From: Mobula hypostoma
Lineage: Eukaryota
Assembly (NCBI RefSeq): GCF_963921235.1
Contig: NC_086102.1
Coordinates: forward strand, 164,300,001-164,364,000
Direction: 5' to 3'
Length of the DNA stretch: 64,000 bases
The stretch's first letter is position 1, and each line of letters starts with the position of its first letter. Under the pieces are notes generated by a model. It was not told the DNA's origin. It did no database searches and saw only the letters and a list, made by a program, of their open reading frames with translations. Made by a program: the position numbers and the translations under genes. Positions 22,330-47,830 of this stretch are shown here, in pieces.

Positions 22330-22850
22330 CGAACAGGCCAGGCCTCGGCAGCTCGGATCTGACAGCTCAAGTACTGGCTAGGAGTGTCAATCAGCACCGC
22401 TGCCACCTACCTATGTGGATGTCTTCAATGTGCTCGATAAGTTCTGCCAGGGTGTTAAAGGTGAGGCCGCATCCACCGAAATTACAAGTGTTGGAGAAAA
22501 AGGAGGCGGCGGCTAACGCTGTCATGATATCCCGCCCCTGGGCGCTCCGCCCTGCCCACGCCTACCGCCGCTCGGCTCCGCGGCTGCCAGGCCGACGACC
22601 CGGGCGGGCGCGCATACACACACGCCCTTTCCCCGACACCCTCTCACTCCCGCACCTGCATGCTTACAAACACACCGTCCGACCGGTGCGACGCGGCGCC
22701 GGCGTCAGGCACTGCCCACAGCCGCCTCCAGTTAACGGAGACGGAGGCGCCGGGCGCCGGTCACGTGACCCGCACAAACTCGTGGCTCCGAACTGCCGAG
22801 CGGGAGTACTGGGCGTTGAGGTGCAGCGCTGAGCAACTCGCAGCTGGAGA
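22330..22850 (-). promoter_or_regulatory. CpG-island promoter/5'UTR of the JAZF1-like gene
   Basis: Sharp rise in GC and CpG in AT-rich background; GC boxes (cccgcccc, ccgccc); perfect palindrome GGTCACGTGACC at 22759-22770. Confidence 0.85.
22411..22525 (-). CDS. JAZF1: JAZF1-family C2H2 zinc-finger gene, coding exon 1 (JAZF1 or a divergent paralog); remaining exons not found in window
   Basis: Reverse strand reads ATG...MTALAAASFFSNTCNFGGCGLTFNTLAELIEHIEDIHI+G then a gtaggt donor (115 nt, phase 1). About 31/38 identical to the human JAZF1 N-terminus as recalled (MTGIAAASFFSNTCRFGGCGLHFPTLADLIEHIEDNHI), with C-x4-C...H-x4-H finger. Lies in a CpG island. Family certain, orthology uncertain. 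Confidence 0.9.
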
Positions 22851-23364
22851 GTGAGCAAAAGGGGAGAAGACTATTGTGTATATCATCTGGACAACAATAA
22901 TAAACTCATTCTTTTCCGTTGCATTTTAATGTGATTTTGAAATACAGAAGTGAAACACTCTCTCCTATGTTTCTTTAAATCTCATTTATAGCTGGGCAGA
23001 TGAGTGTCCAACCAGCTGAGAACTGAGAATGGTCCCATCCAGTTGGATTTTGGAGGAGAAGTGTTGAAAGAGGGCATTTAAATGCCGTTAAATTACGGCA
23101 TTCTAAACCACTCAGAACGGAATAAACATAGTTTGCACGGAATTTGTTGGAGTACATCTTTTTGTATAGCTTCTTCCACTTACCTCGAGCTCAAAACGTT
23201 TGTATTGGGGGTAACAATGATACAGCACCACAAGGTGAATGGAACAGCTGAAACCCATGTATAATAAACTTGATGATTTCATTCAGTTTCATTTCTCGAG
23301 GTAAGGTCGAGTACTGCCCCATCACTGCCACAAACTGATTACAATAAACCTTAAGAAAATACCA

Positions 23365-23500
23365 CGAATGCTAGAGATCCTGGAAATGCTCAGCAAATCA
23401 GACAACTATGATGAAAGATCACTGAACTAAAATGTTAACTCCCTTGAGAGATGCTTTCTGACCTGCTGAGTATTTCCAGCATTTTATGTTCTTATTTTAT
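23365..23500. mobile_element. Older-family Penelope terminal derivative (related copies ~46770-46910, ~51080-51200, ~60610-60720, ~62100-62180)
   Basis: tgatgaaag.tcactga.ct.aaa.gttaact...gatgct...tgacctgctgagtatttccagcatttt motif. Confidence 0.6.
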
Positions 23501-24014
23501 ACAATGGAATACAGATATCCAGATACTCTGAATGCTTTTCACAGGTGTAACACAACTTACTCAAAAATGTGGAAGTTTGTAATTAACTTTTGGTTTCTGT
23601 ACTTTAACTGCTGTTTTTTTCAGAATTCATGGTTTCACTTAAATTAGAAAATGCTCAGATCTACCTTTCTTACGTCAAAAGTGCATGACCTCAAGAATTT
23701 CCTGCAGTAAACTCAATCAAATATATTCTTGACCACCCATTAATCCATCAGCATCTCTTTGCAAATTTCATTGCTTCATAGCTTATCACTGGTAACAGTT
23801 TAAGATACATGACTCTACCCTTTCCTCCAAGTTTTTCATAAATCTGGTATTATTATCAGCATTTAGTACAGAAATCCTCATAATAACAACATACCTCCTG
23901 CTAGTTTCTGTATATAGCCAAAATTATTTTATGGCATTTCACAGATAACTAAGTTCCTAATCAAGTTAATTGGTGGTTTCTGATTCCATACATTCAGAAG
24001 TTGATAATACATGA

Positions 24015-24565
24015 GACCACACTTAAAAGTATTGTGTGTGGTTTTGGGCTCCTTATTTTAGAAAGGATATACTGACATTGGAGAGGGTTCAGAGAAGATT
24101 CATGAGAATTATTCCAAGAATGAAAGGGTTAACGTCTGCCAGCTCTTGAGTTGTATTCCCTGGTTCAGAAGAATGAGGGGGGATCTTACCGAAACATTCT
24201 GAATGTTAAGAGGCCTGAACAGATTAGATATGGCAAAGTTATTTCCCATGGTAGGGGGAGTCCAGGACAAGAAGGCATGACTTCAGGATTGAAGGGCGTC
24301 CATTTAGAACTGAGATGCAGAGAAATTACTCTAGTCAGAGGGTGGTAAATCATTGGAATTTGTTGCCACAAGTGGCAGTGGAGGCCAGGTCATTGGGTGT
24401 ATTTAAGGCAGAGATAGATAGGTTCTTGATTAGCCAGGGCATCAAAGGGTACGGGGAGAAGGCAGGGGAGTGGAGATGACTGGAAGAATTGGATCAGCCA
24501 ATGATTGAATGGCGGAGCAAACTTTATGGGCCAAATGGCCTATTTCTTATATCTTATGGTCTTAT
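24015..24565 (+). mobile_element. CR1 3' end
   Basis: RT C-terminal relic and cttatggtcttat tail. Confidence 0.85.
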
Positions 24566-24782
24566 AAATATAAATTGTTGAATGTCATGAGAGTCCATGT
24601 AAAATAACATAATAATATTTATCTATCACATTAGATTCAAAAAATTGAACTCAGATTTGGACACAAAATTTATCTTTAAAATCTATGAAAAAATATCATC
24701 CTACTACTACTTACTCCTTCCTTCAGAAGACATATATATCCATGCTGTAAAGTACTTGGAAGCAGCAGTACAAAGGCATATA

Positions 24783-25332
24783 CTCAGTGGCCACTTTATT
24801 AGGTACACCTGTACATCTGCTCACTAATGCAAATAGCTAATTAACCAATCAAGTGGCAGAATCACAATACATAAAAGCTTGCTGACATGGTCAAGAGGTT
24901 CAGTTGTTTATCAGAGCAAATATTAGAATGGAGAAGAAATATGATCTAAGTGGCTTTGTGGAATGACGTAGTGATTTGAGTATCGCAGAAACTGATGGAT
25001 CTTCTGGAATTGCCATGCACACCATTTTACAGAGTTTACGGAGAATGGTGCGGAAAACAAAAATAAAATCCAGTAAGTGGCAGTTCTGTGGACAAAAATG
25101 CCTTTTTAATGAGAGAGGTCAAAGTTGACTGGTCATCCTGGTTCAAGCTGACAGAAAGGTGACAATAACTCAAATAACCATGTGTCACAACAGTGGTGTG
25201 CAGAAGGGAATCTCTCAACACTGAACATGTTGAATCTTGAAGTGGATGGGCTACAGCAGCAGAAGACTAGGAACATACACTCAGTGGCCACTTTATCTGC
25301 TATAGAAGGCACCCAATAAAGTGGACACTGAG
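24783..25332 (+). mobile_element. Non-autonomous Tc1-like DNA transposon
   Basis: TA then TIR ctcagtggccactttatt ... aataaagtggacactgag; an internal third TIR copy at ~25280. Confidence 0.8.
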
Positions 25333-25845
25333 GGTATAATGCATTATAGGTGGGTCTGCTTTGGATCATCAGTGCCCAAGCTGGCTGTACTCTCATGTAG
25401 TTATGAGACCTGGTCTGTGACAGATAGTAAGAGAATCAGGACAAGTAATAAACATACTGTATTGATCTCAATCCAGGGACTGAGGCTTGCTTGTGATTTC
25501 TTATGGGGAAGTCTGTTTGCTCCCACATCACAAGAATATGCCTGTATATTAATTGGTTACTGTAGATTCCCCAATTGTTAAAAAAAATGTTGATGGGCAA
25601 GTAAGAGAGATTAGGTTCAGGGCAGTAAGACATGGGAGAATGAGACTGATGGGATTTGCTCTGCTGGGACTTAGCATCAACTATATGGACAATTAGCCTA
25701 CTTCTGTGTTGCAATAAGCTAGTAAGTATTGTGTTGTTATGCAGTACCAATATGTCAAATGGAAAAAGATTGAAAATGAATCTAGCAACTATAATCTGGG
25801 CATCTCAGCAAGAAAAACATAGGAAATTTAATTAATTTATTATTG

Positions 25846-26950
25846 TCACATGTATCTATATACACCTACATCAGGATGCTGTTCATCATTTAATACCATC
25901 ATTCCCACAATCCTGATTGAGAAGTTGCAGAACCTGCTGCTCTGTACCTCCCTCTGCAATTGGATCCTCGACTTCCTAACTGGAAGACCACAATCTGTGC
26001 AGATTGGTGATAACATATCATCCTCGCTGATGATCAACACTGACGCACCTGAGGGGTGAGTGCTTAGCCCATTGCTCTACTTTCTATATACACATGACTG
26101 TGTGGCTAGGCATAGCTCAAATAACATCTATAAATTTGCTGATGATACAACCATTGTTGGTAGAATCTCAGGTGGTGGTGAGAGGGCGTACAGGAGTGAG
26201 ATATGCCAACTAGGGAAATGGTGCTACAGCAACAACCTGGCACTCAATGGCAGTAAAACAAAAGAGCTAATTTTGGACTTCCAGAAGGGTAAGACGAAGG
26301 AACACATAACCAATCCTCATAGAGGGATCGGAAGCGGAGAGAGTGAGCAGCTTCAAGTTTATGGGTGTCAAGATCTCTGAGGATCTAACCTGGTCTCAAT
26401 GTAGTTATAAAGAAGGCTAAACGGTGGTTATACTTTATTAGGAGTTTGAAGAAATTTGGCAAGTTAACAAGTACACTCAAAAACTTCTCTAGTTGTACCA
26501 TGGAGAGCATTCTGACAGGCTGCATCACTGTCTGGTATGGGGGTGGGGGTTCCTACTGCACAGGACTGAAATAAACCACAGAAGGTTGTAAATCTAGTCA
26601 GCTCCATCTTGGGCACTAGCCTACAAAGTACTCAGGACATCTTTAGGGAGCAGTGTCTCAGAAAGGCAGCGTCCATTATTAAGTGGTTGGGCCCGGCAGG
26701 CTGATAGTAATGTACACTCTTATGAACTTAAAAAACTTAACCATCTCAACCTCATTACCATTGATACAGACTGGATAATGTGCACTACCCACCTTCCTGA
26801 AGTCAATGACCTTTGTTTTGCTGGCATTGAAGGAAAGATTATTATCACCATGTTACAAAGTTCTCTATCTTCTATCTTGTTCCCGTACTCTGACTCGCCA
26901 TTATTTGATAAGGTGTCATCTGCAAACTTGTAAATGGAGTCAGAGTTATC
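25846..26950. mobile_element. Rex1/Babar LINE RT fragments (plus 25846-26680; minus ~26690-26950)
   Basis: [20 protein letters not shown] and YKFADDTTIVG motifs. Confidence 0.85.
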
Positions 26951-28477
26951 TATCATTATAACTTGGGCAGTAATTCAACCTTAATTCATTGAGGAGTACA
27001 TATACCAGGAGCTGCAATAGGAATATCTAAAAATGGTTTGTCAATCTGGAACTATCTTCAGTAGAGAACTGTATGCATGATAAATAGTGAAAGCAATGTA
27101 CATTGGACAGCACTACGTAATCCCCCAATCAATGAAACTGACCACAGTCCTACCATACGGTCATGAATGGTCTAATGGGTCAGTTGAATGAGGCAGCTTT
27201 AAAACCTACAAATACCAAGTGATCCATTGTGACTTCTTCCTGGGGACTCTACTCTCAAAAATATCAATTTCCCAGGAATATATTTCATCCATGTGGTTTC
27301 AAGGAATGGCTAAGATAATTGGTTATAAAGCAAAAGCTAAGCTTCTGATAATATTTGTTTGCAATGTGAAGATGTGTTCCAGTTAAAAGACGGAATTCTA
27401 GTTAAGCTGCTGAGTACAACTTAATACTGGCATCTAACCAACAATATCTAAAATTACCCAGGTACGACTGGTCATAAAAAGCGGAACCAATTCCATCGGT
27501 TGAATGAGAGACCATTGATGTATTCTTCAGCACTTTCCAACATTTTCTGTTCACACGATATATGGTAAGTAACCTTTGTGACATTCAATAACAATGGCCA
27601 TCCCAAATAAGAAAACATCTAATTATCAATCCTTCATATTCAGTGATATTACTATCATGAACTTCAATGTCATCCACCTCATGAGAGTCACAAATGGTCA
27701 GAAACCTAATCTGACCAGTCAGATAAATTCAGGGACTCCAAGAGTAAGTCAGAGACTGGTGGCTCACCTCTGATTCATCAAGCTTTTCCATATCTATAAA
27801 AATACTTGATGTATGTTTTGGAAATCTCCTCTTGCCTGGTTAAGTGTGGAAATAATATTACACCAAATAAAAAGGCACCAGTCTTCCATCCTTAATGTTC
27901 ACACCCTTCAGTACTATTGCACTTCTACTAAGGCCTCTTCAACTGCATCTCCCAAACCTGAAGGCATCACCCTAACCTGAACTGCAAGGATATAAAAATA
28001 CTCATTACATGGAAGGGATGAGGGACTGCTCTACTGGTAGCCATCTTGGATTTGATGAGGTGAATGGCCTCCTACTATGTTTCCATTGTTATTGCATGAG
28101 TGAAGTCACCAGAGAAAGTTCCTGGTAGATACAAAGCAGCTTCTTTATTAGACAAAACATGATACAGCAGGCATCGTATGGAGACGCTTTCAATGGAAAG
28201 GTCTCACTGGCCCAACGTAGGGCTCGATATTATATGTGCCGAACGTCAAAGGACAACCCCATATTTACAATTTATGGAAAGTGCTTTCTTTGACCTTCAC
28301 ACCCCCTGATTCACACCCACACCACAGACATCCAAATGAATTTCTATCAGCATTGTTTGAACTGGGATTCACAGCTTTTAGGAACCCAGTGTTAAGAGCT
28401 GCACTCCAAATTAAATGCACAATACATTTTCAGATGTGAAGACTGAAAGTCAACTGCTAAATGTATATGCCCTAAAC

Positions 28478-29232
28478 CAGGGGTCCCCAACCTTTTTTGC
28501 ACCGCGGACCGGTTTAATATTGACAATATTCTTGCGGACTGGCCGACAGAGGGTGGGGCGGTGTTCAAGTAGGGTTAAACTCATCTCAAAATGTCTTTTA
28601 CAGTCAGGGTTGCCAACTTTCTCACTCCCAAATAAGGCACGAAAGTAGCAGTCAGATATGGGACTCTTGTGTTTACCCCGAGAAAGACTACCATGACCAT
28701 GAAGCCTTGCACGGGCACCTGTGTGTGCATGCGTGTACATGCCGATTTTTTTTCTACAAATTGGTTTGGTTTAATCTTCTCAACTCTGTTAAGTGAAACT
28801 ACACTGTACATACATTATTTCTACTTTATATAGGCTGTGTATTTATCATATCATTCCTGCTTTACTATATGTTAGTGTTATTTTAGGTTTTATGTGTTAT
28901 TTGGTATGATTTGGTAGGTTATTTTTTGGGTCTGGGAACGCTGAAAAATTTTTCCCATATAAATTAATGGTAATTGCTTCTTCGCTTTACACAATTTCCG
29001 CTTACAAACGGTTTCATAGGGATGCTCTACCTTAGCTGGGGAAATACGGGACAAGGGCAGTCCCATATGGGACAACCCAATTTAGCCCAATATACGGGAA
29101 CGGGACAGTTGGCAACCCTATGTTCAAATTCAACAGTACGTGACAGGGAATAAGGAAAGGTGCAGCTGACTGATATATTTTCCTCGCGGCCTGGTAGCAC
29201 ATGCTTTGCAGCCCGGTGGTTGGGGACCACTA
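28478..29232. mobile_element. Composite hAT MITE with nested inner elements
   Basis: TIR caggggtccccaacc / ggttggggaccacta; perfect 8-bp TSD ccctaaac (28470-28477, 29233-29240); inner agggttgccaact / agttggcaacccta pair. Confidence 0.85.
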
Positions 29233-30079
29233 CCCTAAACCCAAAAATCACTCTAACACCATAATAATCTTCTTCAAAGGCTTTCATATCACAAAGACAG
29301 GTAAATTTAGAGCTTAAAATTCCACTGGCAGACAAGCCACTAAGTTGCCAGGACTTGCCTCCAGAGCCTGTCAGTGCTCTGAGGCCTTATTCAATACTTA
29401 TTTGTATTGGCGATGCAAAGTGTAAAGAATGATAACTAAAATCAGATACAAACTGTGATTTTTTTTGACTCACACTAACTCGTTCCTTCAATAAAATAGT
29501 TTTGTTTTGTTTAGTTTCTACAAATTAAGTAAAGTCAGCCCACTGTGCTAGACAAGTCCTCTCAATTTGTTGACAGTTGCAGATGGAAGGAGCTTCACCA
29601 TATCAGCTCCAGTGGAGAATTGAATACGTTCCTTCCGACTTTTAAAAACCTTTCTTAGACCTTTAAGCCTGCTCAATCCTTCCTGCTGCCTGCATTGTCC
29701 TTCTAATTCTTTTGGGGTTTTTTGTGCAATCTTTTCCAGTATTTAAACAATAATTGACCTTGTTCCCAACAAAGACTTCCAAAAACGTTTCAGTGAATTT
29801 TACAGACTATAACCACTTTGGGAAATTTAACCAGATGTGATAAATCAAAAATATTTATTCACGTTTTTACAAAACGTTTTGAAACCACTTACCCATAATT
29901 TTTGATAAATAATATGAAATTCTTTCATATTTAATCTGCAAAAACATATTTTGAAGATTTTTTCCACAAAACTACCCACATAGCACAGATTGAACTGAGG
30001 AAAACCTTTACATATTTTTTCAATTCAAACAATTTCAGAATACTGAGTATTTTTTAATATTATTAAAACTTTAGCATTT

Positions 30080-30700
30080 GGCCTCCGAATACCGTAGAAC
30101 CAAGATATGGGGACATTACGTCCCGAAGTTGACCTTCGATGGTCTTTGTCCTATCCGGGTGATCGCCGGAGTACATTAACACGCCTGCGCCGCCGTAACA
30201 GGAGGCGCACCAAGTAATAACGAGACTGACTGCCATTTGTGCTGCTAACTTTTGAAAGAAAAACGTAACGTCGAGCGTTATCTACATATCTCGGCTAGTG
30301 ATCGTCTATCTATTCGGATTCCGCCATTATCATGTTTGCCTGCTCAAAAGTGTCGTGGTTGGCCGCGGCAGCGGTAAGTGATGATCGAATCGTTGCCCTA
30401 TCCTTGACCGACTGTCAGTGCCCGTTCCGTCGGCCTTGTACAATACAGTATTTCGATTCGGGAACTCTGCCCCTCGCTTCACCTCTTCGCTCTGAATGAA
30501 CAATGTACTCGGGCCTGGGATTTGAATTAGACCTCGATTAGGATTTTGAAACACGTTATTCAGTCAATATTGATTAATATTAATTAGTAAGAGAGGTTTC
30601 CGCATGACCGGGCGTTTGGGGAGGTTAACCATCTTGGCATTAACGAAGTGCCGCGGTAGCTGTAGGTCATTCGGCCTGGGTTTAGTACATTTAACTGGGA
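30080..30700 (+). promoter_or_regulatory. CpG-island promoter of the ATP5MC gene
   Basis: CpG-rich. Contains TGACCTTCG (ERR-like half site, ~30130), ACGCCTGCGC (NRF1-like, 30181) and GCCATTT/CCGCCATT (YY1-like, ~30232 and 30321), typical of OXPHOS promoters. Confidence 0.75.
30332..30373 (+). CDS. ATP5MC3: ATP synthase Fo subunit c (ATP5MC family), coding exon 1: MFACSKVSWLAAAA
   Basis: ATG at 30332, 14 codons, gtaagt donor at 30374 (phase 0); resembles MFACAKL... of ATP5MC3. Paralog number tentative. Confidence 0.85.
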
Positions 30701-30997
30701 CTCAACATTTGTCTGTCCTTGTAAGTAATTCGAAAAGTCATGCGAATTTTGTGTGTTTTGCGGTGTATTAGTGGCTGTCCAACATATACTAGAACGCAAA
30801 CATTTTACTTTTAATCATAATGAACTGATCGGATCTGCACCTATAAACTTGCAACACCGCCTCATGTTTAGTTCCAACACTTAATTTAACAATACATGCA
30901 GGAGTAGGCCATCTAGCTTCTTTTCAGCTCTGTCATTCAGTTTGGCACCATTAGCTCGACAAAATGAGCATTTGTTGAATAAAATTTTTTGAAAATA

Positions 30998-32072
30998 TAG
31001 AAAACCTACAGCACAATACAGGCCCTTTGGCCCACAAAATTGTGCCGAACATGTCCCTACCTTAGAAATTTCCAGGGTTACCCATAGCCTTCTATTTTTC
31101 TAAGCTCCATGTGCCTATCCAAAAGTCTCTTAAAAGACCGTACGTATCCGTCTCCACCACCGTTACCGGCAGCCCATTCCACGCACTCACCACTCTTTGC
31201 GTTTTAAAAAAAACTTACCCCTGATATCTCCTCTGTACCTACTCCCCAGCACATTAAACCTGTGCCCTCTTGTGGCAGCCATTTCAGCCCTGGGAAAAAG
31301 CCTTTGACTATCCACATGATCAATGCCTGTCATAATTTTATACGCCTTTATCAGGTCACCCCTCCAAGGAGAAAAGGCCGAGTTCACTCACATAAGGCAT
31401 GCTCCCCAATCCAGGCAACATCCTTGTAAATCTCTGCACCCTTTCTATGGTTTCCACTTCCTTCCTGTAGTGAGGCAACCAGAACTGAGCACAGTACTCC
31501 AAGTGGGGTCCTATATAGCTGCAACATTACCTCTCTGCTCCTAAATTCAATTCCACGATTGATGAAGGCCAATACACCGTATGCCTTAACCACAGAGTCA
31601 ACCTGCACAGCTGCTTTGAGCATCCTATGGACTTGGACCCCAAGAGCCCTCTGATCCTACACACTGCCAAGAGTCTTACCATTAATACGATATTCTGCCA
31701 TCATATTTGACCTACCAAAATGAACTGCTTCACACTTATCTGGGTTGAACTCCATCTGCCACTTCTCAGCCCAGTTTTGCATCCTATCAATGTCCCGCTG
31801 TAACCTCCGACAGCCCTCCACACTATCCACAACACCCCCAACCTTTGTGTCATCCGCAAACTTACTAACCCAGCCCTCCACTTTCTCATCCAGGTCATCT
31901 ATGAAAATCACGAAGAGTAAGGGTCCCAGAACATACCCCTGAGGCACACCACCGGTCACCGGCCTCCATGCAGAATATGACCTGTCTACAACCACTCTTT
32001 GCCTTCTGTGTGCAAGCCAGTTCTAGATCCACAAAGCAATGTCCCCTTGGATCCCATGCCTCCTTACTTTCT
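30998..32072 (-). mobile_element. CR1 3' part in ATP5MC intron 1
   Basis: GVPQGYVLGPLLF and KFADDTKVGG motifs; 3' tail at left end. Confidence 0.92.
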
Positions 32073-32183: not shown

Positions 32184-32261
32184 GTTCGCAATGGAGCCGC
32201 ACCTCTTTCTAGACCACTTTCTGTGTCATTGATGTACAAACCAGAGGGTCAGTCTGGAAAA
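32184..32261 (+). CDS. ATP5MC3: ATP5MC coding exon 2: VRNGAAPLSRPLSVSLMYKPEGQSGK (mitochondrial presequence)
   Basis: Polypyrimidine tract and ctaactag acceptor, 78 nt open frame, gtaggt donor; aligns with the IR.GS...RP.S.S.L.RPE presequence exon of ATP5MC genes. Confidence 0.88.
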
Positions 32262-34368: not shown

Positions 34369-34605
<237 letters not shown>

Positions 34606-35272: not shown

Positions 35273-35339
35273 TACTGTCAATTATATATTCTGAGCTCCA
35301 AAATGTTGTTGAAGCTTGGTGCCCACAGGTCGTGGTATA

Positions 35340-38300
35340 TTGCTGGTTCAGAATCAAGTTCAATATTACTGGCATATGTCTTTTGTTTTACAGCAGTGGT
35401 ACATTGCGATACATAACTATAAATTACAGGAAGTACTGTATATAGGAAGAGAGTAAAAAATAGGAAATTCATAAGTCTGATGGCCAAGCGAAGCTGTTCC
35501 TGAATCATGGTTCTAATGGCTCCTATGCCGCCTCCGTGATAGCAATGAGAAGAGGGCACATCCTGAGTAATGAGGTCATTAATGATGGATGCCACCTTCT
35601 TGAGGCATTGCCTTTCGAAGGTGTCCTCGATGCTGGGGAGGCTAGTGCCCATGATGGAGTTGGCTGAGTTTACAACTTTCTGCAGCTTTTTCCAATCCTG
35701 CGCAGTGGTTTCTGCACACCTGATGGTGATGTAACTAGTTTGAACGTTCTCCATAGCGCATCTGTAGAAATTTGCAAGTATCTTTGGTGACATATCAATT
35801 CTCCTCAAACTCAAAATGAAATATAGCAGCTGTCATGACTTCTTTGTAATTGTATCAATATATTGGGCCCAGTATAGATCTTCAGAGATGTTGAGACCCA
35901 GTATCTTGAAATTGCTCACCCTTTCCACTTCTGACCCCTCGATGAGGACTGGTTTGTTTCCCTCAACCTCCCCTTCCTGAATCAATTCGCGGCAGTGGTG
36001 TTTTGAGAAGCAGCCAATCAGTGATCGGAATTGACTGGCACGAACAAATTAAAATAAGGCAGGGGCAAGCGGAGTGGCCATTGTTGGAGTGGACAGTGTT
36101 AAAGAGTGGGGATTTTGAGGCTTCAATGAGGAGAGGCTTGAGTGAAAAAAGGCAAAAAAGCTGTAGGTAGATTTTTTTTCTCCCCATTTACTAGTTAGTT
36201 TTCCTTCTTTATATTTGTACAGTTAGAACTGTAAGGGTCCCGGGAAGATAGTTCAATGCTTCTCTTGCGGGATGTGAGAAGGCAGAGAGACCTCCAGTGT
36301 CCCTGATGACTTAACCTGAAAGAAGTGCATCCACCAACAGCTTCTCACACTATACGTTAAGCAGTTGGAGCTGGAAATGGATGAATTCCAGATCGTTTGG
36401 GAGGCTGAGGGGGTAATAGATATATGACATATAGAGTGGTACTTACACCCAAGGTGCAGGATACTGGAGACTGGGTAACAAAAAGGGGAAAGAAGTTAAA
36501 CAACCAGTGCAGAGTACCCCTGTGGCCATCCTCCTCGACAATAGGTTGGATACTGTTGGGGGTTGACCTAGCGAAGGGGAGAGAAGAGGCAAGTGTGGTG
36601 ATAGGGGACTCGTTAAGGGAACAGAAAGGAGGTTCTGTGGACGAAAATGAGATTCCCACATGGTATATTGCCTCCAGGGTGCCAGGGTCTGGAATATCTC
36701 TGATCAAGTCCTCCGCATTTTTAAGTGGCAGGATGAGCAGCCAGAGGTCATAGTCCATGTAGGTACTGATGACATGGGTTGGAAGATTGACGAGGTTCTG
36801 CAAACTGAGTTCAGGGAGTTGAGTGCTAAGTTAAAAGGCTGGACTTCCAGGGTTGTGATCTCAGGGTTGCTACTGATGCCATGTGCTACTGAGGTTAGAA
36901 ATAGGAAGAGTGGCCATTGTTGGAGTGGACAGTTGACAAGGCCCTGCATGGGAGGTTGGTCAAAATGGTTCAGTTGCTCAGCATTCAAGATGAGGTTGGG
37001 TGGGACTACAACTAGAGATCACGGGTTAAGGGTGAAAAGTTTAAGGGGAACATGAGGGGAACTTCTTCACTCAGGATCGCGAAAGTGTGGAATGAGCTGC
37101 CAGTGAGGTGGTGCATGCAAGCTCAATTTCAAGATTTAAGTTAAGTTTGGATAGGTATATGGATGGTAGGGGTATGGAGGGTTACGGTTCGTGTGCAGGT
37201 CAATTGGATTAGGCAGTTTAAGTGGTTTGGCATGGACAAGATGGGCCAAAGGGGTTGATTCTGTGCTGCACTTTTTATGGCTCTATGACTCTTCACATTT
37301 AATTCCTTGATCTTACTGACATTGAGTGGAAAGTTGTTGCTGCAACACCACTCAAGCAGCTGATCTGTTCTACTTCCTTGTCACCATTTGAGCTTTGCCT
37401 AGCCACACAATTGTGGGTGTAGAGAGGGTAGAGCATTGGGCTGGGCATGCATTCTTGAGGAACGCCAGTGTTGACTGTCAGCGAGGAAGAGATGTTATTT
37501 CCAATCTGTACAGGCTATGGTTGCCCATTATGTCAGTCAAGGATCCATTTGCAGAGGGAGGTACAGATGGCCAATTTTAGAGCTTGTTGATTAGAACTGG
37601 GTGTGTGATTGTGTTTTAGTCATAGTCATACTTTATTGATCCTGGGGGAAATTGGTTTTTGTTACAGTTGCACATAAATAATTAAATAGTAATATGTAAA
37701 TGTTGAGCAGTAGTCAATAATCAGCAGCCTAACATGGGTATTACAATTGTCCAGGTGATGCAAGGCCAAGTGGAGAGCATGTGAGATCCCATGCACTGAG
37801 ACCTATTGTGGCAATAGGAAAATTGCAGCGGGTCCAGGATTCTGCTTCAGCAGTTGATTCTGGCCATGACCAACTCTCAAAACACTTCATCACAGTAGAA
37901 GCGAGTGCACTGGGTGATGGTCATTGAGGCAGCTCACCCTGCTCTTCTTGGGTGCTGGTATGATTGTCACCCTTTTGAAGTAGGTGGGAACCTACGACTG
38001 CAGCAGTGAGAGATTGAAAATGTCCTTGAACACTCTCAACAGTTGGTTGGCATGGGTTTTCAGAGCCCTACCAGGTACACCATCAGGGCCTGACACCTTG
38101 TGAGGGTTTATCCTCTTGAAAGCTGTTCTGACATTGGCTTCTGGGACCGATATCACCAGATGCTGCAGGGACTTGCGCAGGTGTGGTTTTATTCTCCCTT
38201 TCAAAGCATGCATAAAATGCATTGAGCTCATCTGGGAGTGAAGCATCATGGCCATTCATGGTTAGGTTTTGCTTTGCAGGAAGTAATGACCTACAAACCC

Positions 38301-39470: not shown

Positions 39471-40016
39471 ATCCGTGACTGTGACTGGATTTCAGCTGTA
39501 GAGGTTCTAAATGGGAATATTTGATGATTCTCATCAAAGCTGCACACAAGTCTCCACTTAATGACACCATTCTACTGGAAATATTTATTTGAACCACTAT
39601 TTGAATACAGGAGATTGTAACAAATTGCAGTGTTTTTCTTGATGACATAGGATTTGTTTTGGTGCTATATGTGAATGTAACTTTATAACTGACCCACTTA
39701 AAGTAATTTAATATTGAAGTAATGAGAACTAGTATAGTTATGAGCTGGATGTTACCAAGGCATTGTAACTCCTACTAAGATGGTTCAAGTTTATGATTAC
39801 AAACTTTTTAAAATATAACTAACTAGTATGTCTAGCAGTGAAACGTAATTACATTACTATTGGGATATTTGCTTTGATTACGGGCCCAAACAATTGGTAA
39901 AACATTGAAATTTTAATCATTAAATTTAAATTTAAATGTGTATGTGTTACCAGTAATGTAAAGCTGATAGTAGTTGTGTAGGTAAAAAGTGTAAGGTAAA
40001 ATTAATAAAAATATAT

Positions 40017-40470
40017 ACTGCCTTGCAAAAGTAGTCAACCTTTTGTTCACACAAGAGTATTTTAACCAGGGATTTTGATCAATTTAACTGGGAAAATTTT
40101 TTATTTGTGAATCACATACTCCTTTTTTCACAGTCAAGCCCAAAAAAAAACACAGGGAAAGTTATAAAGCATGAAAGACTAAAAATTTAAAAACTGAATT
40201 GTCAGCACTTCGAAAGTATTCATCCCCTTTGCTTGGTACTTAGTTGAACCACCTCTCGAAGCTATTACAACCATTAGCTTTGCACCATGTGATGGAACAA
40301 GATTTACCCATTTCTCTTTGCAAAATTGTTCAAGCTTTGCCAGGTTAGTTTGGGAGTGGCAGTGAACAGCAATCTTGAGGTCTTGACAGAGACGTTCGAT
40401 CAGGTTAAGGTCAGGACTCTGAACTGGGCCACTCAAGGACATCAATTTTCTTCATTTGAAGCAACTCCAT
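40017..40470 (-). mobile_element. Tc1 transposase C-terminal relic
   Basis: QSPDLNLIERL..DLK...ASRGGSTKY; terminal tgccttgcaaaagta. Confidence 0.8.
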
Positions 40471-42369
40471 GGATAATAGTACCCTTATTCATTTTGTGGT
40501 CTTGTGATAATTTTGTTTTTCAGAGCAGTGCCTCAAAACATTTTTTTTAAATCAAGTTTTAAGTTCTAGAATTTGCATTGTCAACATAATTTCACTTTGC
40601 TAATAACACTTCAATGTTTAGGTTGGGAAGCTGTGCTTCAAATATTTGACATTGAATTTTATCCTATAAACTAAACATACACTCGACTGCAATATTAGTT
40701 TTATTCAATGTGAAAAATGCAAATCTTGCATCAAGCTGTTAAATCAAGGACCGAGTCATCTATCCTTTGGTCCAATTAGGCTGTCACTGCTTGAGGAGCA
40801 GAACGTTCTTTTTAGAAACTTAAATGTCTTCCTAAGCAAGCATCACTGAAAACTGGCAAATCAGTGAACACCTTATGGAATTTTGTGTGAGAAATAACTA
40901 TTGCAATTGACCATTTAACACTTGCTGCATTATGTTACAAGTATAATACTTTTTAAGAGCACATTTTTTTTTATTTTGTAAGTTTTTTCTTCACTCCTGA
41001 TGGTGCTGAAACCTTATTTGGCGATATTTGATTCACTGGCACACTGCAACAAATACTTCATCAACTTCTACACAAGGATATTTGGGTTATGAATCATGAC
41101 TGACTGCCTTTTTTTCTCCTTTCCCTAATACAAATGCCATTTATAGTACTTTTGTATCCCTCCAGCTTAAATGACTTGTGTAGGGCAGAGTGGGAGAAAT
41201 GGGAATGCTCTAAGTTCTGGCATAGATTTGATTGGTTGGTTGAATGGTCACTTTTGTTGTCACAAGGAAAATTATGAAAAATATCAAATCCATCATTTCT
41301 CTTATTGGTCAATTCATTCTTCATGCATTCTCTCAAAGCATCAACATACAATGGAGCTTACATTCCTTCCACTTTCACAATCTGTCGACTTTTTAAAATT
41401 TCAAGTAGGCATCATATAATCTTTATTAGTCTTAGTGATCTTGGATTGTGAAGATAATCACCAAATCCAAGATACAGCAGTAATTTGTCAGAACAAGAAA
41501 AAAAGGTAAAATATGTAGAAATTAAAGATATGAAAATGATTTGCATATAACTGAAGACCAATAACATGAAAATAAGGTGATCATTTTCACAGGTTGATTT
41601 TACATTTATTCATCTGATGATCTTCTGCCACAGTGACCTCAAAATTCCATCTGACATGTTATATTAATCAATATAAATGTTATTTTAAGAATGCAAAAGC
41701 ATAATAAATATTTGTAGCATAATTTATTGACCATTAATGGAAAATGTATCTCACTCCTTTAATAAATCAGCTGGCGAATGGCAAACACTTTTTTATTAAA
41801 GTTTTTTTTTTAAAAAGGCTTTATATTATAGGAAGGATGAAGTATTTGAAGGGCAATTGGAGACAACGAGCTGAGAAAGCTATCCTCATTCATCCAAATA
41901 TATACGTTTGTACTATAAAAGAAGTTGAAATTATTGAGAATACTTTATTCCAATTAACTTGGAAGAAAACTGAATGGAGCTGAATGAAGCCAAATAGTTG
42001 CCACCTCCTGATTAACTGCATTGGCATCTTCTGCTGGCATATTAAAAGATTAATGAACTAAAAGTGAAAATCTGAACACCTTTCATCATCTCATCTTTCA
42101 CACAGATGTACATTTTTCACTTTTCATTCTCTTACTCTCATTCTGACATTAATAGCCACTTTTTCAATCACTTTAAATCCAGTCCTACAGGCCTCCATTC
42201 TTGCAAAACCAGTTTCATTTCCAAAATCATTTCCCATTGTTCATGTGCTCCACTCCTCTCCATTTTTTCAGCCTTTATATTCAAATGTCAACCCGTTTTC
42301 TTCACAGCCCCAAGCAAATTGTTAATTTAGAGGAAAAGTCATAGTGTAACTGGGAAAATAATATGATTT

Positions 42370-43000
42370 GAGATTTGGAATCATGGTATAACAACAGCCT
42401 TCAACCCAGCTCATCCATGGTGTCCATCAAGCTAGTCTCATTTGCCTACATTTGGCCTATAGCCCTATATATGCTATCCATGTACTTAAATAAATGACTT
42501 TCAAATATTACTGTTTCTGCCTCAACCACTTTCTCTGGCAAATCATTCCACACATGCACTGCCGTGGTCCCTTCTAAATCTTTCACCTCCAACCTTAAAC
42601 CCATGCCTTCTATTTTTAGTTCCACTTCCCTGGGAAAAAGACAATATGCCATTACCTGTTATAAGCCCTTAGTTATTTTATTTTATAAGGTCACTTTTCA
42701 ATCTCCTATGTACCAAGGAATGAAGTCTGAACCTGCCCAATCTCTCCCTATAACTCAGTGCCTCAAGTCCTGGCAGCATCTTCCTTAATCTTCTCTGCAT
42801 TCTTTCCAATTTAATAATGTCTTTCGTATAATAGGGTAACCAAAACTGTACACAATATTCTAAGCACCAACATTCTGTACACTGCAACATAACATCCAAT
42901 CCCTGAATGCCATGATTATCAGTGAGCTAAATGTCTTCTTCATAGCCCCGTCTACCTGTAATGTCATGCTAGCAAACCATGAACGTGTATTTCATGAAGT
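42370..43000 (-). mobile_element. CR1 3' relic
   Basis: LEYCVQFWLPYY..DIIKLER motif. Confidence 0.8.
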
Positions 43001-43537
43001 CTCTTCTGAAATACTTTTGTAGCGTTACATTTAACTTCCCTTAAGGAAAATCTAGACATTTTATCTCAAGGTATTTTACACAAATGCAGTTTATTCATGG
43101 GAATTTCAAGGTATGCACTCTTTCGATCACTCCCATTATTGAAATAGCAGCACAGGTAAAACCATCATCTTTTTTAATGCAGACACAAGTGAGATAGTCT
43201 TGTTTTTTGGGGACTGTTTACTGGGAAAAAAAAAGTTATTAAGGCTTTGATTCTCAAGCTTTTCCATATCATTTCTTGGTTCTTGGGGCTACATATTTTG
43301 TTAATATCATGGTTTTGTACAATTAAATGAATGAAAACAGGCTAAGGTCATAATAGGATACCTGAATTTGAGAGACTCTACTTTTGTCCAACTTTCTGAA
43401 ATAATATCCTGCCATCTTTTTTATATGATCATTGGCAGCCCAAAATAAATAAACTGTAACTTTGCTATTTTCAATTAGTGTTAAATTGAGATTATTAGAT
43501 ATTAGAATGTTAATTTATTTTTTATTTTTTTCTCTAG

Positions 43538-43652
43538 AAATCCTTCTCTGAAACAGCAGTTGTTCTCGTATGCTATCCTTGGATTTGCCCTATCTGAAGC
43601 TATGGGACTCTTCTGTTTAATGGTCGCTTTTCTCATTTTATTTGCTATGTAA
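43538..43652 (+). CDS. ATP5MC3: ATP5MC last coding exon: (R)[37 protein letters not shown]
   Basis: T-rich tract and ctag acceptor; phase matches exon 3; includes the proton-carrying Glu; TAA at 43650-43652. Spliced CDS 42+78+200+115=435 nt (144 aa). Confidence 0.97.
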
Positions 43653-43765
43653 AATTATATTGAATGGGAAGAATGGTCTAAATATGTGCAAATGTAATTA
43701 TTTCATTGGCTGTCATTGATGTTGGAGTTCATAAAGCATATGCTTCACATCTTTTATCATGTTTC

Positions 43766-43854
43766 AATAAATCCATATACTAGTAAAACTTTTTTTTGCT
43801 TGAGAGTGCAAGTGCATAACATATTAGATGATTACTATGGATATGTAAAATAAA
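43766..43854 (+). terminator. ATP5MC polyadenylation signals (AATAAA at 43766-43771 and 43849-43854)
   Basis: Two canonical hexamers ~115 and ~200 nt after the stop; T-rich stretch follows the first. Confidence 0.65.
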
Positions 43855-43871
43855 TTTATTTAATGAAGCAA

Positions 43872-44098
43872 CAAACAAGAGGAAATCAGCAGATGCTGGA
43901 AATCCAAGAAACACACACAAAATGCTGGAGGAACTCAGCAGGCCAAGCAGCATCTATTGAAAAAAGTACAGTCAATGTTTCAGGCCGAGACCCTTCCTGC
44001 AGTCCTGCCGAAGGCTTTCGGCCCAAAATGTCGATTTTACTTTTTTTTTCCCATAGATGCTGCTTGGCCTGCTGAGTTCCTCCAGCATTCTGTGTGCG
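43872..44098. mobile_element. Fold-back Penelope terminal derivative with 16-bp TSD
   Basis: ttatttaatgaagcaa at 43856-43871 and 44099-44114; inverted arms meet at hammerhead relics. Confidence 0.88.
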
Positions 44099-44639
44099 TT
44101 ATTTAATGAAGCAATTTGAAGTACAATATTGTTAGTATAGATTTAAAATGAGACTCTGAATTTCTTTGTTTTGAAGAAGTGAGATGCCAGGTGGACTCTA
44201 GTGAACTAAGGTGTTAAAACATTTGGAAGGTGAGGCACTTACAAAAGCTCACTGCATGAATGAAGATTGTTAGATCTTAGAGTATAGTATTAGGACCACC
44301 ATTCTTAAATTTCCACAGTTTTGCATTTAAAAGCACAGTGCAAATTATTAATCAGCTTTCAACTTCCTCCATTGTTTTATCCATAGAGATTGTTATTTTA
44401 AGATCTTATGCAAGGGTGGGGGGAGGTAAGGTTTCAACCATCAGAAACTAAATTTAATGCAAAAATCAAGAAGATGTATTTTCCATAAAGATGTTCAAAA
44501 ATAGCTGTGAGAAAGGAGGAGTATCTTAATAGGGTCTGTGCTCAAGTACCCAAATGTATTGCAAAAGCATTAAGAAGAATTAAAAACTAAATCAAAAAGA
44601 TGAAGTAATCAGAAGTCACCGGAAATCGATAACATGTCA

Positions 44640-45150
44640 GATAGATAGAACAAGAGAGCACAGGAACAAACCCTTCAGCTCACAATGCCAATCTAAACTC
44701 ACTCTATATCCCTCTATTCCTTGCCTGTTCACATATTTGTCTAAATGCTGCTTAAACAATGCTATCATATCTGTTTCTACCACATATCCTGGTAGTGTGT
44801 TCTGGACACCTACAATCCTGTTTTGTTTTTAGAAAAAAGCATCATGTCTTCATCACAATTTGCTCTTTTCATCTTAAACCTATGGCTTCTTGTATTTTAC
44901 ATTTTCGTCCTGTTAAAAAGACTCACCATCCATCCTACCCCAATTTTACATACTGTAGTTCTATCAGTTTGCCCCTCAGCCTACCTCCAAAGAAAACAAT
45001 TCAAGTATGTCCATTTTATATCTAATACCTTCTAATCTAAGCAACATCCTAGTGACCCTCTTCTCCCTCTGAAGTAGCTACATCTTTCCTGCAATGTAGC
45101 AGCCAGAATTGAACACTGTATTCCAAACAGGTTAGATAGAACTGCAAAGG
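44640..45150 (-). mobile_element. CR1 3' relic
   Basis: Decayed CR1 tail and RT C-terminal sequence. Confidence 0.6.
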
Positions 45151-46249
45151 AAAGCAAGTTGATATCACTTCAAACATGGAGCTGAGTTATAAGGAAAAAA
45201 GTTCAGGAAAGTTCCTTTGGCCAAGGGTCAAATTACATTTTGGCTGTCAAAACATAACAAATTTCGGCAGAGTAATGCCTACTCCAACAAATCAATCAGA
45301 ACAGAGTATAGGAAAATATCTAATTGATTTTAAAAGGTTTCTTTTGGTTTAATGTAACTGGACTAAACCAGTAAACTGAAGTGTGACCGCAAAATTCAGT
45401 CTCACGAGAGTGAATATCAAGGGCATGAAGATGTCGTTTAACTTGGCAGAGGAAGCGAAAGAAGCTCTGAAATCATCGGTGCTGGGAGATATGGAAGAAG
45501 GCCCTGGGCAAAGTCCACACGCCCCTCGGGAGGAGATAGAACTGCATTAAGAGCTCGGACCAGCCTGTATGCGCAACCTAACAGGCACGGGCAGTTAACG
45601 TCCTAGGTGTGAAGCTTTCTGGTTATTCTTTTATCGGAAAGTCATTCGTTGCACTTTTGTATTTAGTCAATTAAGGGGCCAATTTGTTTCCGACTATTAC
45701 AGGTCAGAGTTTTAAGGTAATGGCTCAGTTAACTTGTTAGTACAAGGATAACATGGTAAGGTGATAAAAGTCCACCTAGATTTACTTTTTATCTTTTGCT
45801 TTCTAAGGTGATACTCAATATACCCAAATGTCATACTTCATAAAGAATGACACTGAAAAACAGCAGTTTGTTCTGAATAACTTTAGAACGTTATGTCTCC
45901 AGTAGACTTGATTATGTTCCTGGGCACCAGATAAGATGTCACTGGCACCATCACTACGCGACGGTCTATTAAAGCAACAGTTTTTCGCAAGAGTGCTGTT
46001 GGGGTCTTGATTGTAATATACTATATTTGTGACGGAAATGGTTTTAATTATATAGGTTAATGGGTTTGTCCAGGTTTTTTTTTCTTGCCCCTTTGATATG
46101 ATTGTCTATGAGAACTGCTTTGCCTTTCTAATTTGTTGGTGCTAGAGGGGGGCGGTTAATGTTAATGTTCAGTGTCTGACATTGCTAAGTGACACTCACA
46201 GATGTTAAAGTAAAGGGTTGAATGGGGGGGGTGGGAAGGGGGTAACTCA

Positions 46250-46740
46250 GGGCTCCTCCAGCAACTTACAACAACAGATCCAGGGGAAGATGAGCATCAC
46301 AGATAAATTAGAAACATCTTCTAAATGATGACTCCCACCTTTCCCTTACGGGAAAAAAACACGCAAAGTCTGGCTGGCAGACCTGACTGCAGCTAAGAAG
46401 ATTGTAGTCCAGCATTGGAAACCTCCCCATGATATTTCAAATACTCACTGACTTCGGAGCTTTTGGACATTTCTTACCTGGAACTTACATCAACTTACAA
46501 ACACAATCTTAATGTGGACAAATTTGATAATCTAACTTAAAAGATCTTTTGTTAAAATAGGAATGCTGTGTCTGTGTATGCACTACTATTCAGTTGGTTG
46601 GTGGGGGGGGAGAGGGGTGGAGGGGGGATGGTGATGAAGGTTGGGGGGTGGCTGGGTTAAACAGTCAAAATATAATTGGCAATTGGTTGTATTGAATGTA
46701 ATTTGTTGGTGTTGCAATAAAAAATTAATAATTTAAAAAA
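46250..46740 (+). mobile_element. L1-like LINE 3' end
   Basis: LTAAKKIVVQHWK relic, G-rich 3'UTR, AATAAA and A-rich tail. Confidence 0.65.
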
Positions 46741-47229
46741 ATTCACTCTCACCTATCAGATAAAGCCAAGAGATTGCAGGTGCGTGAATACCGAGTGGGG
46801 GAAAACACACTTGTGGAACTCAGTATATCAAGCACCTGGACCGTGTTGCAGGGTCTCGAATCGAAACCCTTGATAGACGCTGCTTGACCAGTTGAGTTCT
46901 TCCAAGGAAGAATGTCTTTTGAAATCAGAACTCTCCAAAATTCACAACTGCCATCATTTTAAACGCACCTTTCATTTCACTTTTCCCACTGAACTGACCC
47001 TGCAGACCACTCAACTTCCTGACCCATATGCAAGTTGATCTAAAATTTTATCCCCGTGAGTGCCGATCTCAACTTCCTCTCGTGTGTTACTACTTTTCCC
47101 GCATCACACGCACAAAAAAAACAAATTTTAACCCTATTAACCTATCCCTCAGCAAGCTGCCTACTCCTGACTTTTGTATCCTCTCCGCCGATGCACTTTC
47201 TTGCCAGGTTTCCCACTGAAAATAAGGAG

Positions 47230-47830
47230 AGAGGCATGTAACGCCGGCACGAAGTAGTTTCCCATCACCTTCCTGTTGAATTTCCGTCTCCACCTTTGCT
47301 TGCCTTAGTTTGATATAATGGGACGGTGTGGGAGCGATACTTGAAGAACTGCAGGAGTGGAGTCTGCGCAGAGACCTCTCCGGCGGCCGCCGCCGTCACG
47401 TGATTTTCGTGACGCACGGCGCCGAGCCTCGCGATTTCTGGCCCGATCTCGCACGATTGGTAGTGAGTAGGAATTAGCCCCTGTGGTAAGTTTGTAAACA
47501 ACGTTAAACGGAGATTGTGATGGCTCGTTCAGCTGTCAGAAATGATCGGAGTGCCGTTTATTTTGGGAATTAATTCAGGTGGCGGTCGTGTCGGTAGTGC
47601 TCGGGTGTTTTGCGGGTGGGTGTGTTCGCAGACCTTATTCGTTAATATGGCGACGCTCCCCGGCCGTCGTGTCCTGGGGTGGGATCGAGATGCTCTCAAC
47701 TGCATCGGGTTCGTGATCGAGCTCATTCCATTCCGAGAATCAAGTGTTGCACACAATTTCGAAGTACCCAGCTTTGATCAGCAGGGAGTGACCTTGGTCT
47801 GATTTTTGATCGTGGTGGACACGTTTGTAT
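47230..47830 (+). promoter_or_regulatory. CpG-island promoter and probable non-coding exon 1 of a third gene (candidate ATF2/ATF7/CREB5 family by synteny only)
   Basis: CpG-rich; GTCACGTGA E-box (47395-47403), TGACGCA CRE-like site (~47410), CTCGCGA/TCTCGC motifs, candidate donor TG|GTAAGT at 47486. No coding exon identified downstream in the window. Confidence 0.7.

Follow-up and report, generated by a model that had tools for sequence, protein, structure and literature searches.

An intact second JAZF gene of cartilaginous fishes, divergent from an ATP5MC gene in what is probably the HoxD neighbourhood of a ray

Each human Hox flank retains only two of the genes CALCOCO, JAZF, ATP5MC and ATF. 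The HOXA flank has the order TAX1BP1 - JAZF1 - CREB5, while the HOXD side follows the order ATF2-ATP5MC3-HOXD-TTN-CREB1: human 2q31 contains ATF2, ATP5MC3, a gene desert, LNPK, EVX2 and HOXD, with TTN about 2.5 Mb beyond; titin is a marker of the 2q31/HoxD side. A study treating jazf1/2, atp5g1/2/3 and atf2/7 as families reports a 'jazf2 pseudogene' of the mouse next to Atp5g3 and Atf2, near Hoxd (PMC9976460). The JAZF position of the mammalian HOXD flank is taken by the gene desert and, according to that study, by this pseudogene. The first-pass annotation of the locus described here had stated that JAZF and ATP5MC are adjacent nowhere in human; this is correct for intact genes, but has to be qualified by that pseudogene of the mouse Atp5g3-Atf2 region. 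Teleosts have two JAZF genes per genome, as do the cartilaginous fishes discussed below, but their jazf1a and jazf1b are both JAZF1 genes, which arose by duplication of the HoxAa/HoxAb flank and lie inside the JAZF1 clade; one such flank has the order creb5b-jazf1b-tax1bp1b-hibadhb (PMC2080641).

The window (the whole 64-kb stretch of Mobula hypostoma DNA that was analysed, in which there are no N runs) contains JAZF exon 1 on the minus strand and an ATP5MC gene on the plus strand, placed head-to-head and divergently, with 7,807 bp from ATG to ATG; the exon structures bear out the arrangement and the 7.8-kb distance initially proposed. The coding part of exon 1 of the JAZF1-like gene ('JAZF2') occupies 22411-22525 on the minus strand, running from the ATG at 22525-22523 through 38 codons plus 1 nt to a donor GT at 22410-22409, also on the minus strand. 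It encodes the N-terminal C2H2 finger, which has its zinc ligands C14/C19/H32/H37 intact and matches the Pfam family zf-C2H2 weakly; the C-x4-C-x12-H-x4-H finger, the first coding exon of 38 codons and its phase 1 end place it in the JAZF family. Position by position the exon lines up with JAZF1 N-termini, and it differs from those of tetrapods (P0018, P0023 and others) at 7 of 38 positions, the very count given in the first-pass annotation. It is identical to residues 1-38 of P0265, the RefSeq JAZF1-like protein of Mobula hypostoma and Hypanus sabinus, and by this identity the exon belongs to the chondrichthyan gene already annotated in databases as 'JAZF1-like' (RefSeq accessions XP_059822690.1, XP_062908201.1 and XP_007888225.1). 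A CpG island at 22001-23000 (GC 0.55, 65 CpG, o/e 0.89) covers the promoter and exon 1.

From exon 1 the gene runs off the left end of the window, which holds the first 22.4 kb of intron 1 (1-22410, minus strand), mostly repeats, and exon 1 is the only JAZF exon found in the 64 kb. The whole coding range extends over about 173 kb (10001-183266 in locus coordinates), the exons for the C-terminal fingers falling outside the window; the full product, P0265, has two such fingers and matches PF17017 in the zf-C2H2_aberr region with 33.1 bits, for a cut-off of 27 bits. The three zinc fingers of the family are thus all preserved, and a role as nuclear cofactor, similar to that of JAZF1, is most likely. 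An uninterrupted JAZF1-like CDS of 243 aa lies on a 1.9-kb Logan contig of a skate, and this indicates a spliced transcript in that animal.

The ATP5MC gene is complete, with four CDS exons bordered by AG/GT throughout and totalling 432 nt, or 144 aa. Its CpG-island promoter, 5'UTR and coding exon 1 lie at 30001-30373 on the plus strand (53 CpG, o/e 1.18), with the CDS at 30332-30373 encoding 14 aa before a GTAAGT donor. Exon 2 (32184-32261, plus) encodes 26 aa of the presequence; it is the best-scoring AG..GT candidate and is required to reach the annotated 144 aa, and whale shark locus L004 has a homologous segment at 9927-10047. The last 29 residues of the presequence and the first 37.7 of the mature c subunit come from exon 3 (34405-34604, plus), which is 82% identical to L004 26567-26824 and whose PDB matches are c-subunit precursors. 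The rest of the mature subunit is encoded by exon 4 (43538-43652 including the stop, plus), with 31.4 bits against Pfam ATP-synt_C, 87% identity to L004 33287-33443 and AATAAA signals following at 43766 and 43849. In assembly GCA_963921235.1, a 144-aa ATP-synt_C gene is called 7,807 bp upstream of JAZF1-like, matching the difference between 30332 and 22525. Its spliced structure, with a presequence preceding a mature proteolipid of 75 residues, is that of an ATP synthase subunit c precursor: the mature part from exon 3 is identical to solved mammalian chains and that from exon 4 is identical in all the vertebrate ATP5MC retrieved. The gene encodes a c-subunit precursor in which the 75 residues of the mature protein agree with those of mammals, while the presequence is lineage-specific.

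Downstream of ATP5MC, a promoter-like CpG island with a putative non-coding first exon lies at 47280-47700, predicted on the plus strand, with a possible donor at 47488; the island counts 58 CpG with o/e 0.97 over 47001-48000. Blastn aligns this block with Callorhinchus locus L002 (4154-4418) and whale shark L004 (43104-43320), and the alignments with these two species (A1, A2) show conserved CCAAT, forkhead-like and YY1-like blocks. The third gene that had been proposed on this strand stands as a conserved promoter-like block at about 47.3-47.7 kb, but a coding exon for it, sought up to the window end at 64000, was not found. We predict that the promoter belongs to ATF2.

How widely is this arrangement shared? 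The JAZF-like/ATP5MC pair is present in two Mobula-type assemblies, 7.8-7.9 kb apart, and in Pristis, 8.5 kb apart. In the whale shark, exons 2-4 of ATP5MC are followed 9.7 kb downstream by the same third promoter block, both on the 99.3-Mb chromosome that also carries JAZF1-like. In orectolobiform sharks no ATP-synt_C CDS was found within 10 kb of JAZF1-like. Callorhinchus has no ATP5MC at the locus, the JAZF-like gene and the third promoter block lying 5.6 kb apart; hence the triple order is not universal among chondrichthyans, and an insertion of ATP5MC in elasmobranchs is conceivable in principle.

The JAZF1-like gene is kept across the cartilaginous fishes. A cluster at 90% identity (P0261) is composed of 29 sequences, all chondrichthyan, from orectolobiform, lamniform and carcharhiniform sharks, skates, rays, sawfish, electric ray and Callorhinchus, and the Mobula and Pristis proteins are 98% identical. 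Besides it, true JAZF1, with more than 90% identity to its tetrapod counterpart, is found in Callorhinchus (P0243), Narcine (P0244) and several sharks (P0312/P0316), while JAZF1-like shares about 76% identity overall with JAZF1. The two genes lie on different chromosomes, of 172.4 Mb (JAZF1) and 101.2 Mb (JAZF1-like) in Heptranchias and of 163.1 and 108.4 Mb, respectively, in Stegostoma. Among the annotated proteins listed, in lists of the best 120 matches each, we found no intact counterpart in mammals or other bony vertebrates, in agreement with the earlier suggestion of a paralogue absent in mammals. The sequences indicate that the JAZF1-like clade is a constrained, intact second JAZF gene which cartilaginous fishes have retained and bony vertebrates have apparently lost. 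The databases name it by similarity, with no stated paralogy or neighbours; as it is already annotated there, the finding concerns the history of a gene family rather than a novel type of gene.

Could the juxtaposition have another origin? That it is an assembly artefact is hardly credible: the window is gap-free, two Mobula-type assemblies and Pristis have the same arrangement and spacing, and the succession of ATP5MC and the third promoter recurs in the whale shark. The recurrence of the pair in three independent assemblies, with no N runs, led us to reject misassembly. Very improbable, too, is the view that the window shows the true JAZF1 of the HoxA flank together with a retained fourth ATP5MC ohnologue. 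The order JAZF(-)/x/ATF-family(+) would also fit TAX1BP1-JAZF1-CREB5, but the exon in the window is an exact match to the JAZF1-like clade and true JAZF1 is separate, on other chromosomes, in sharks, Narcine and Callorhinchus. Of the two alternatives originally offered, an extra ATP5MC beside true JAZF1 was consequently discarded and a second JAZF gene upheld. The locus might instead belong to the HoxC or HoxB paralogon, its ATP5MC being ATP5MC2 or ATP5MC1 and its third gene something other than ATF2, which we regard as improbable. The opening residues MFACSK and the exon-2 motif LSRPLS may point to human ATP5MC2, and the ATP5MC tree is poorly resolved and contains no full C2 sequence. However, rays carry a separate ATP5MC type on a chromosome of 70-85 Mb (Hemitrygon, Hypanus, Mobula birostris), and there is also a C1-like type, found in Narcine and Pristiophorus; the window gene, moreover, scores best with C3-type sequences: its top database match is a whale shark 'C3, mitochondrial-like' protein (103 bits, vs. 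at most 91 for other full matches), a 141-aa precursor ranks above the named C1 and C2 among its PDB matches, and in the tree it falls with sauropsid C3 at 85/83. By these weak similarities it is probably the orthologue of ATP5MC3.

A more serious contender, if still an unlikely one, is a duplication of JAZF1 in the chondrichthyan stem, the copy having moved to another chromosome, evolved fast at first and landed beside ATP5MC3 by chance; JAZF1-like would then not stem from a whole-genome duplication, nor would the order of the genes be ancestral. A FastTree analysis of 155 JAZF proteins recovers a JAZF1-like clade (support 100) of 16 sequences, exclusively chondrichthyan, and no orthologue outside this group is present among the proteins listed, as the duplication would predict. 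The clade also has a long stem branch (0.36-0.37) vs. a very short crown, the AU test retains trees uniting all chondrichthyan JAZF in one clade (p 0.079 and 0.090 in two samplings), and the ML tree to which full-length shark JAZF1 was added fails to place the clade. In the best tree of the first ML analysis, the outgroup of which was a divergent second JAZF gene of hagfish rather than an invertebrate sequence, JAZF1-like forms a separate clade (100/100) outside gnathostome JAZF1 (82/85), and the latter includes chondrichthyan JAZF1 (96/98); as both genes coexist in chondrichthyans, JAZF1-like is not the orthologue of JAZF1. Further against a late duplication, JAZF1-like shares the multi-exon structure of JAZF1 and the phase-1 end of its exon 1, and therefore is no retrocopy; it occupies exactly the slot where a JAZF gene is expected if the four Hox flanks are paralogous, beside ATP5MC and facing away from the ATF-position promoter; and the mouse jazf2 pseudogene has been reported in the same flank (PMC9976460).

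We consider it fairly probable, then, that the window is the HoxD centromeric flank of a ray, with an intact second JAZF gene diverging from ATP5MC 7.8 kb away, the locus as such lying probably in the HoxD neighbourhood. JAZF1-like would be the whole-genome-duplication paralogue of the JAZF1 of the HoxA flank, and bony vertebrates would have lost it or turned it into a pseudogene. Like the HOXD centromeric flank of human and mouse, the ray locus has a CpG-island promoter a few kb downstream of ATP5MC on the same strand, as well as an ATP5MC presequence that is C3-type by weak tests; unlike it, an intact JAZF gene of 173 kb lies directly upstream of ATP5MC. With the human HOXA flank it shares an exon 1 of the same structure (38 codons plus 1 nt) and a JAZF gene whose transcription heads for the presumed Hox side and away from the promoter in the ATF/CREB5 position, but the ray has the other JAZF gene, on another chromosome, and ATP5MC between the two promoters. 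The order before the duplications may have been JAZF toward Hox, with ATP5MC and ATF away from it, each human flank retaining a part. The retention of an ancestral Hox-flank order, as suggested at the outset, is plausible on indirect evidence, but the AU test, which keeps the chondrichthyan duplication, and the lack of ATP5MC in Callorhinchus weigh on the other side, and none of Hox, EVX2, LNPK and ATF2 was observed directly.

A single locus with JAZF, ATP5MC and an ATF-position promoter helps in reconstructing the order of the Hox flanks before duplication, and it adds one more well-supported ancient vertebrate paralogue kept in cartilaginous fishes and apparently lost in bony vertebrates, while revealing no new mechanism. 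Should the HoxD assignment be right, the former occupant of the present HoxD regulatory desert is revealed as well. Taken to its full extent, the idea becomes tentative and rather doubtful: JAZF1-like would be the ohnologue of the fourth paralogon, intact only in cartilaginous fishes, its 173-kb body would fill the interval between ATP5MC3 and the HoxD side, and the centromeric desert of tetrapod HoxD would be its remains. Were this true, the desert, with its digit and genital enhancers, would have its paralogous counterpart in the JAZF1/TAX1BP1 territory with the distal enhancers of HoxA, and sharks and rays would show a HoxD landscape still containing a working gene. As to nomenclature, the name 'jazf1b' given by NCBI to shark JAZF1 stands for no more than similarity, and together with 'JAZF1-like' it masks the true paralogue pair in the annotation of sharks and rays.

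The minus-strand coding exon that runs from its ATG at 22525 to 22411, comprising 38 codons plus one base before a GT donor, encodes residues 1-38 of P0265, which the annotations of both Mobula hypostoma and Hypanus sabinus list as JAZF1-like. Its peptide retains all four C2H2 ligands (C14, C19, H32 and H37), gives a weak match to zf-C2H2 in Pfam and differs from the N-terminus of tetrapod JAZF1 at seven of 38 positions, exactly as the first-pass annotation had counted. When this 38-aa exon was used as HMMER query against the full library, most matches were N-termini of canonical JAZF1, and one was a near-identical fragment; a full-length JAZF1 query retrieved the JAZF1-like protein of Chiloscyllium (P0261), the 90% cluster of which (n = 29) is chondrichthyan throughout, spanning sharks of several orders, skates, stingrays, sawfish, electric ray and Callorhinchus. 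When P0265 itself was the query, ordinary JAZF1 came next after the chondrichthyan clade, at 76% identity. Canonical JAZF1 is also present in the same lineages, namely Callorhinchus (P0243), Narcine (P0244) and sharks (P0312 and P0316), and is so strongly conserved that the full-length shark proteins fall in one 90% cluster with those of frog and mammals. Its gene lies on a chromosome separate from that of JAZF1-like in both Heptranchias (172.4 and 101.2 Mb, respectively) and Stegostoma (163.1 and 108.4 Mb).

In a FastTree analysis of the 155 JAZF proteins retrieved, the JAZF1-like clade consists of 16 sequences, all chondrichthyan. The proteins of Mobula and Pristis are 98% identical, all members of the clade, with Callorhinchus among them, form a single cluster at 90% identity, and all three fingers of JAZF1 are kept. 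The whole 243-aa CDS of the skate gene is found uninterrupted on a 1.9-kb Logan contig, which must derive from a spliced transcript, given that the gene is spread over more than 100 kb. The exclusively chondrichthyan clade, the separate JAZF1 on another chromosome, the high identity and the uninterrupted CDS together establish JAZF1-like as a real and constrained second JAZF gene, the function of which would be that of its family. Hence, of the two alternatives originally envisaged for the locus, a second JAZF gene is upheld, while true JAZF1 next to a fourth ATP5MC gene is effectively excluded, the exon belonging to JAZF1-like and true JAZF1 residing on other chromosomes.

The neighbor of this exon on the plus strand is a complete ATP5MC gene of 144 codons, with coding exons at 30332-30373, 32184-32261, 34405-34604 and 43538-43652, AG/GT borders throughout and AATAAA signals at 43766 and 43849 after the last exon, which matches ATP-synt_C in Pfam. 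Its mature part shows no difference from the mammalian c subunits of solved structure or from any vertebrate ATP5MC protein retrieved, so that, judged by family membership, it would encode a standard c-subunit precursor. JAZF1-like and ATP5MC have one CpG island each, with 7,807 bp between their start codons, which agrees with the head-to-head arrangement at 7.8 kb first read from the sequence. The same pair recurs in two Mobula-type assemblies, with a spacing of 7,807 bp (as in the window) and 7,864 bp, and also in Pristis, a sawfish, where the spacing is 8.5 kb; therefore it is at least of batoid age and misassembly of the junction is effectively excluded. Among database candidates of about 139 aa or less retrieved with a 79-aa stop-free stretch around ATP5MC exon 3, the whale-shark orthologue P0322/P0441, named 'C3, mitochondrial-like' by NCBI and sharing an unusual Q in place of R before DIDTAAKF, matches best by a wide margin. 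Its gene and JAZF1-like share a 99.3-Mb chromosome in the whale shark, and the ATP5MC locus there (L004) aligns with exons 2, 3 and 4 of the window gene. Orectolobiform sharks have over 10 kb between JAZF1-like and the ATP5MC CDS, and the 10-kb flanks of shark JAZF1-like and true JAZF1 yielded no neighbor gene.

The third element of the locus is a CpG island at 47-48 kb, with a possible GT donor at 47488. The block is conserved in the window (47428-47666), in the whale shark (L004 43104-43320, aligned with window 47454-47666 and lying about 9.7 kb beyond the ATP5MC stop codon) and in Callorhinchus (L002 4154-4418), where it has the same side and orientation as in the window. The alignment of ray, shark and chimaera leaves invariant the CCAAT-type, forkhead-type and YY1-type motifs of this promoter-like block: CGATTGG, GTGGTAA.TTTGTAAACAACG with a forkhead-like core, and GTTAA.ATGGCGAC, which is YY1-like. 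No coding exon was found between the island and the window end, and motif scans for first coding exons of ATF2, ATF7 or CREB5 type returned nothing relevant across the whole window. Conservation just past the putative splice donor equals that of the putative exon.

In Callorhinchus milii (MU249837.1, L002 4154-10123) JAZF1-like exon 1 and the third block are only 5.6 kb apart, with ATP5MC absent between them. Neither motif scans nor relaxed tblastn detected an ATP5MC, LNPK, CALCOCO or bZIP exon in the 51 kb of this locus, from which it follows that ATP5MC was either lost or moved there, or inserted in elasmobranchs. The sole tblastx match, in intron 1, was rejected as a repeat.

To which Hox paralogon does this locus belong? 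Human 2q31-q33 has the order ATF2, ATP5MC3, desert, LNPK, EVX2, HOXD, TTN and then CREB1, and transcription of both ATP5MC3 and ATF2 points away from HOXD; the order and orientations of the ray genes agree with this if the third promoter is that of ATF2. Weak indications that the window gene may be ATP5MC3 come from the NCBI name of its shark orthologue, from its best PDB match, a 141-aa precursor that outscores those named C1 and C2 and aligns furthest into the presequence, and from its grouping with sauropsid C3 (85/83) in a poorly resolved tree without C2. Rays have two other ATP5MC types, one C1-like (Narcine; also in Pristiophorus) and a divergent one located on a 70-85 Mb chromosome (P0432, P0442 and P0438, from Hemitrygon, Hypanus and Mobula birostris). 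The three types seen fit the usual C1/C2/C3 set, with no sign of a fourth gene among proteins up to about 139 aa, a limit that left out full-length C2 and most C3 proteins. In Hypanus the divergent gene, the presequence of which ends in ..LRPFQTSALTC or ..SSLTS in this ray type, is followed by a gene for a 395-aa 7TM receptor that may be GPR84-like, hence of a HoxC neighborhood. A position of the window in a paralogon other than that of HoxD is a rather improbable reading, less likely than a duplication in the chondrichthyan stem.

The latter scenario, in which JAZF1 duplicated in the stem of chondrichthyans and the copy landed beside ATP5MC by chance, is the main rival, and we consider it unlikely. 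Against it, the first ML tree placed the JAZF1-like clade (100/100) outside the gnathostome JAZF1 clade (82/85), which includes chondrichthyan JAZF1 (96/98). However, this placement is not robust and depends on sampling: Once full-length shark JAZF1 is added, the position of JAZF1-like falls to a polytomy, and the AU test does not reject a single clade of all chondrichthyan JAZF (p = 0.079 and 0.090). The gene trees recover a separate chondrichthyan JAZF1-like clade but do not date it. They are not truly rooted either, because the intended outgroup, P0128, proved to be one of two JAZF genes of the hagfish Myxine glutinosa and was dropped as root; of these, P0245 is near JAZF1, and P0128, named 'JAZF1-like', is very divergent, with an end branch of about five changes per site. 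The strong conservation of JAZF1 leaves it little phylogenetic signal, so that dating the duplication has to rely on position. The explanation that we favor as probable is that the window represents the HoxD-side flank and JAZF1-like its JAZF ohnologue, which would have been kept by cartilaginous fishes and lost from bony vertebrates. JAZF1-like would lie head-to-head with ATP5MC3, followed by ATF2, in what would be the ancestral order JAZF, ATP5MC, ATF, with ATP5MC3 secondarily lost or moved in Callorhinchus.

More than 15 chondrichthyan genomes already carry a similarity-based annotation of JAZF1-like, and a JAZF2 located in the Atp5g3-Atf2 region has been suggested in print, in passing. Our literature search found 'jazf2' in the paralogue sense in a single paper (PMC9976460), which lists jazf1/2, atp5g1/2/3 and atf2/7 as families and mentions that mouse has a 'jazf2 pseudogene' within the Atp5g3-Atf2 region, a region contacting Hoxd promoters. 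The teleost jazf1a/b pair differs in that both are JAZF1 copies of the HoxA flank (PMC2080641). The same search found no description of a chondrichthyan JAZF paralogue, of the intact gene as JAZF2 or of its adjacency to ATP5MC. The result is useful, if ordinary, comparative genomics; the HoxD regulatory desert of tetrapods may be the shell of the JAZF1-like gene and, if so, is what remains of it.

Some minor features of the locus complete the picture. The ATP5MC presequence, with its end at 34489-34491, closes in ..TTQ immediately before DIDTAAKF, and in ..ARQ in the whale-shark orthologue; R, mostly as SR or TR, is found there in almost every other vertebrate ATP5MC retrieved, a guinea-pig C1-like protein likewise ending in Q. 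Positions -10 (R), -8 (F) and -5 (S/T) are retained. Reverse-transcriptase-like ORF fragments of LINE-type repeats (26060-26380, plus strand; 31657-31995, 35278-35814 and 38-39.6 kb, minus strand) fill the space between the genes as well as introns 1 and 3 of ATP5MC; intron 3, 9 kb long, consists mostly of such repeats. No Rfam family reaches its gathering score anywhere in the window. Isoforms X1 of JAZF1-like (P0267 from Amblyraja/Leucoraja and P0281 from Heptranchias) contain 18 additional residues between those of exons 1 and 2; motif and tblastn scans found neither an exon for them nor exon 2 in the window, which includes 22 kb of intron 1. A second, weaker CpG-rich kilobase (20001-21000; 35 CpG, o/e 0.66) is located in this intron, some 1.5-2.5 kb past exon 1; it may represent either an alternative start or a portion of the promoter island.
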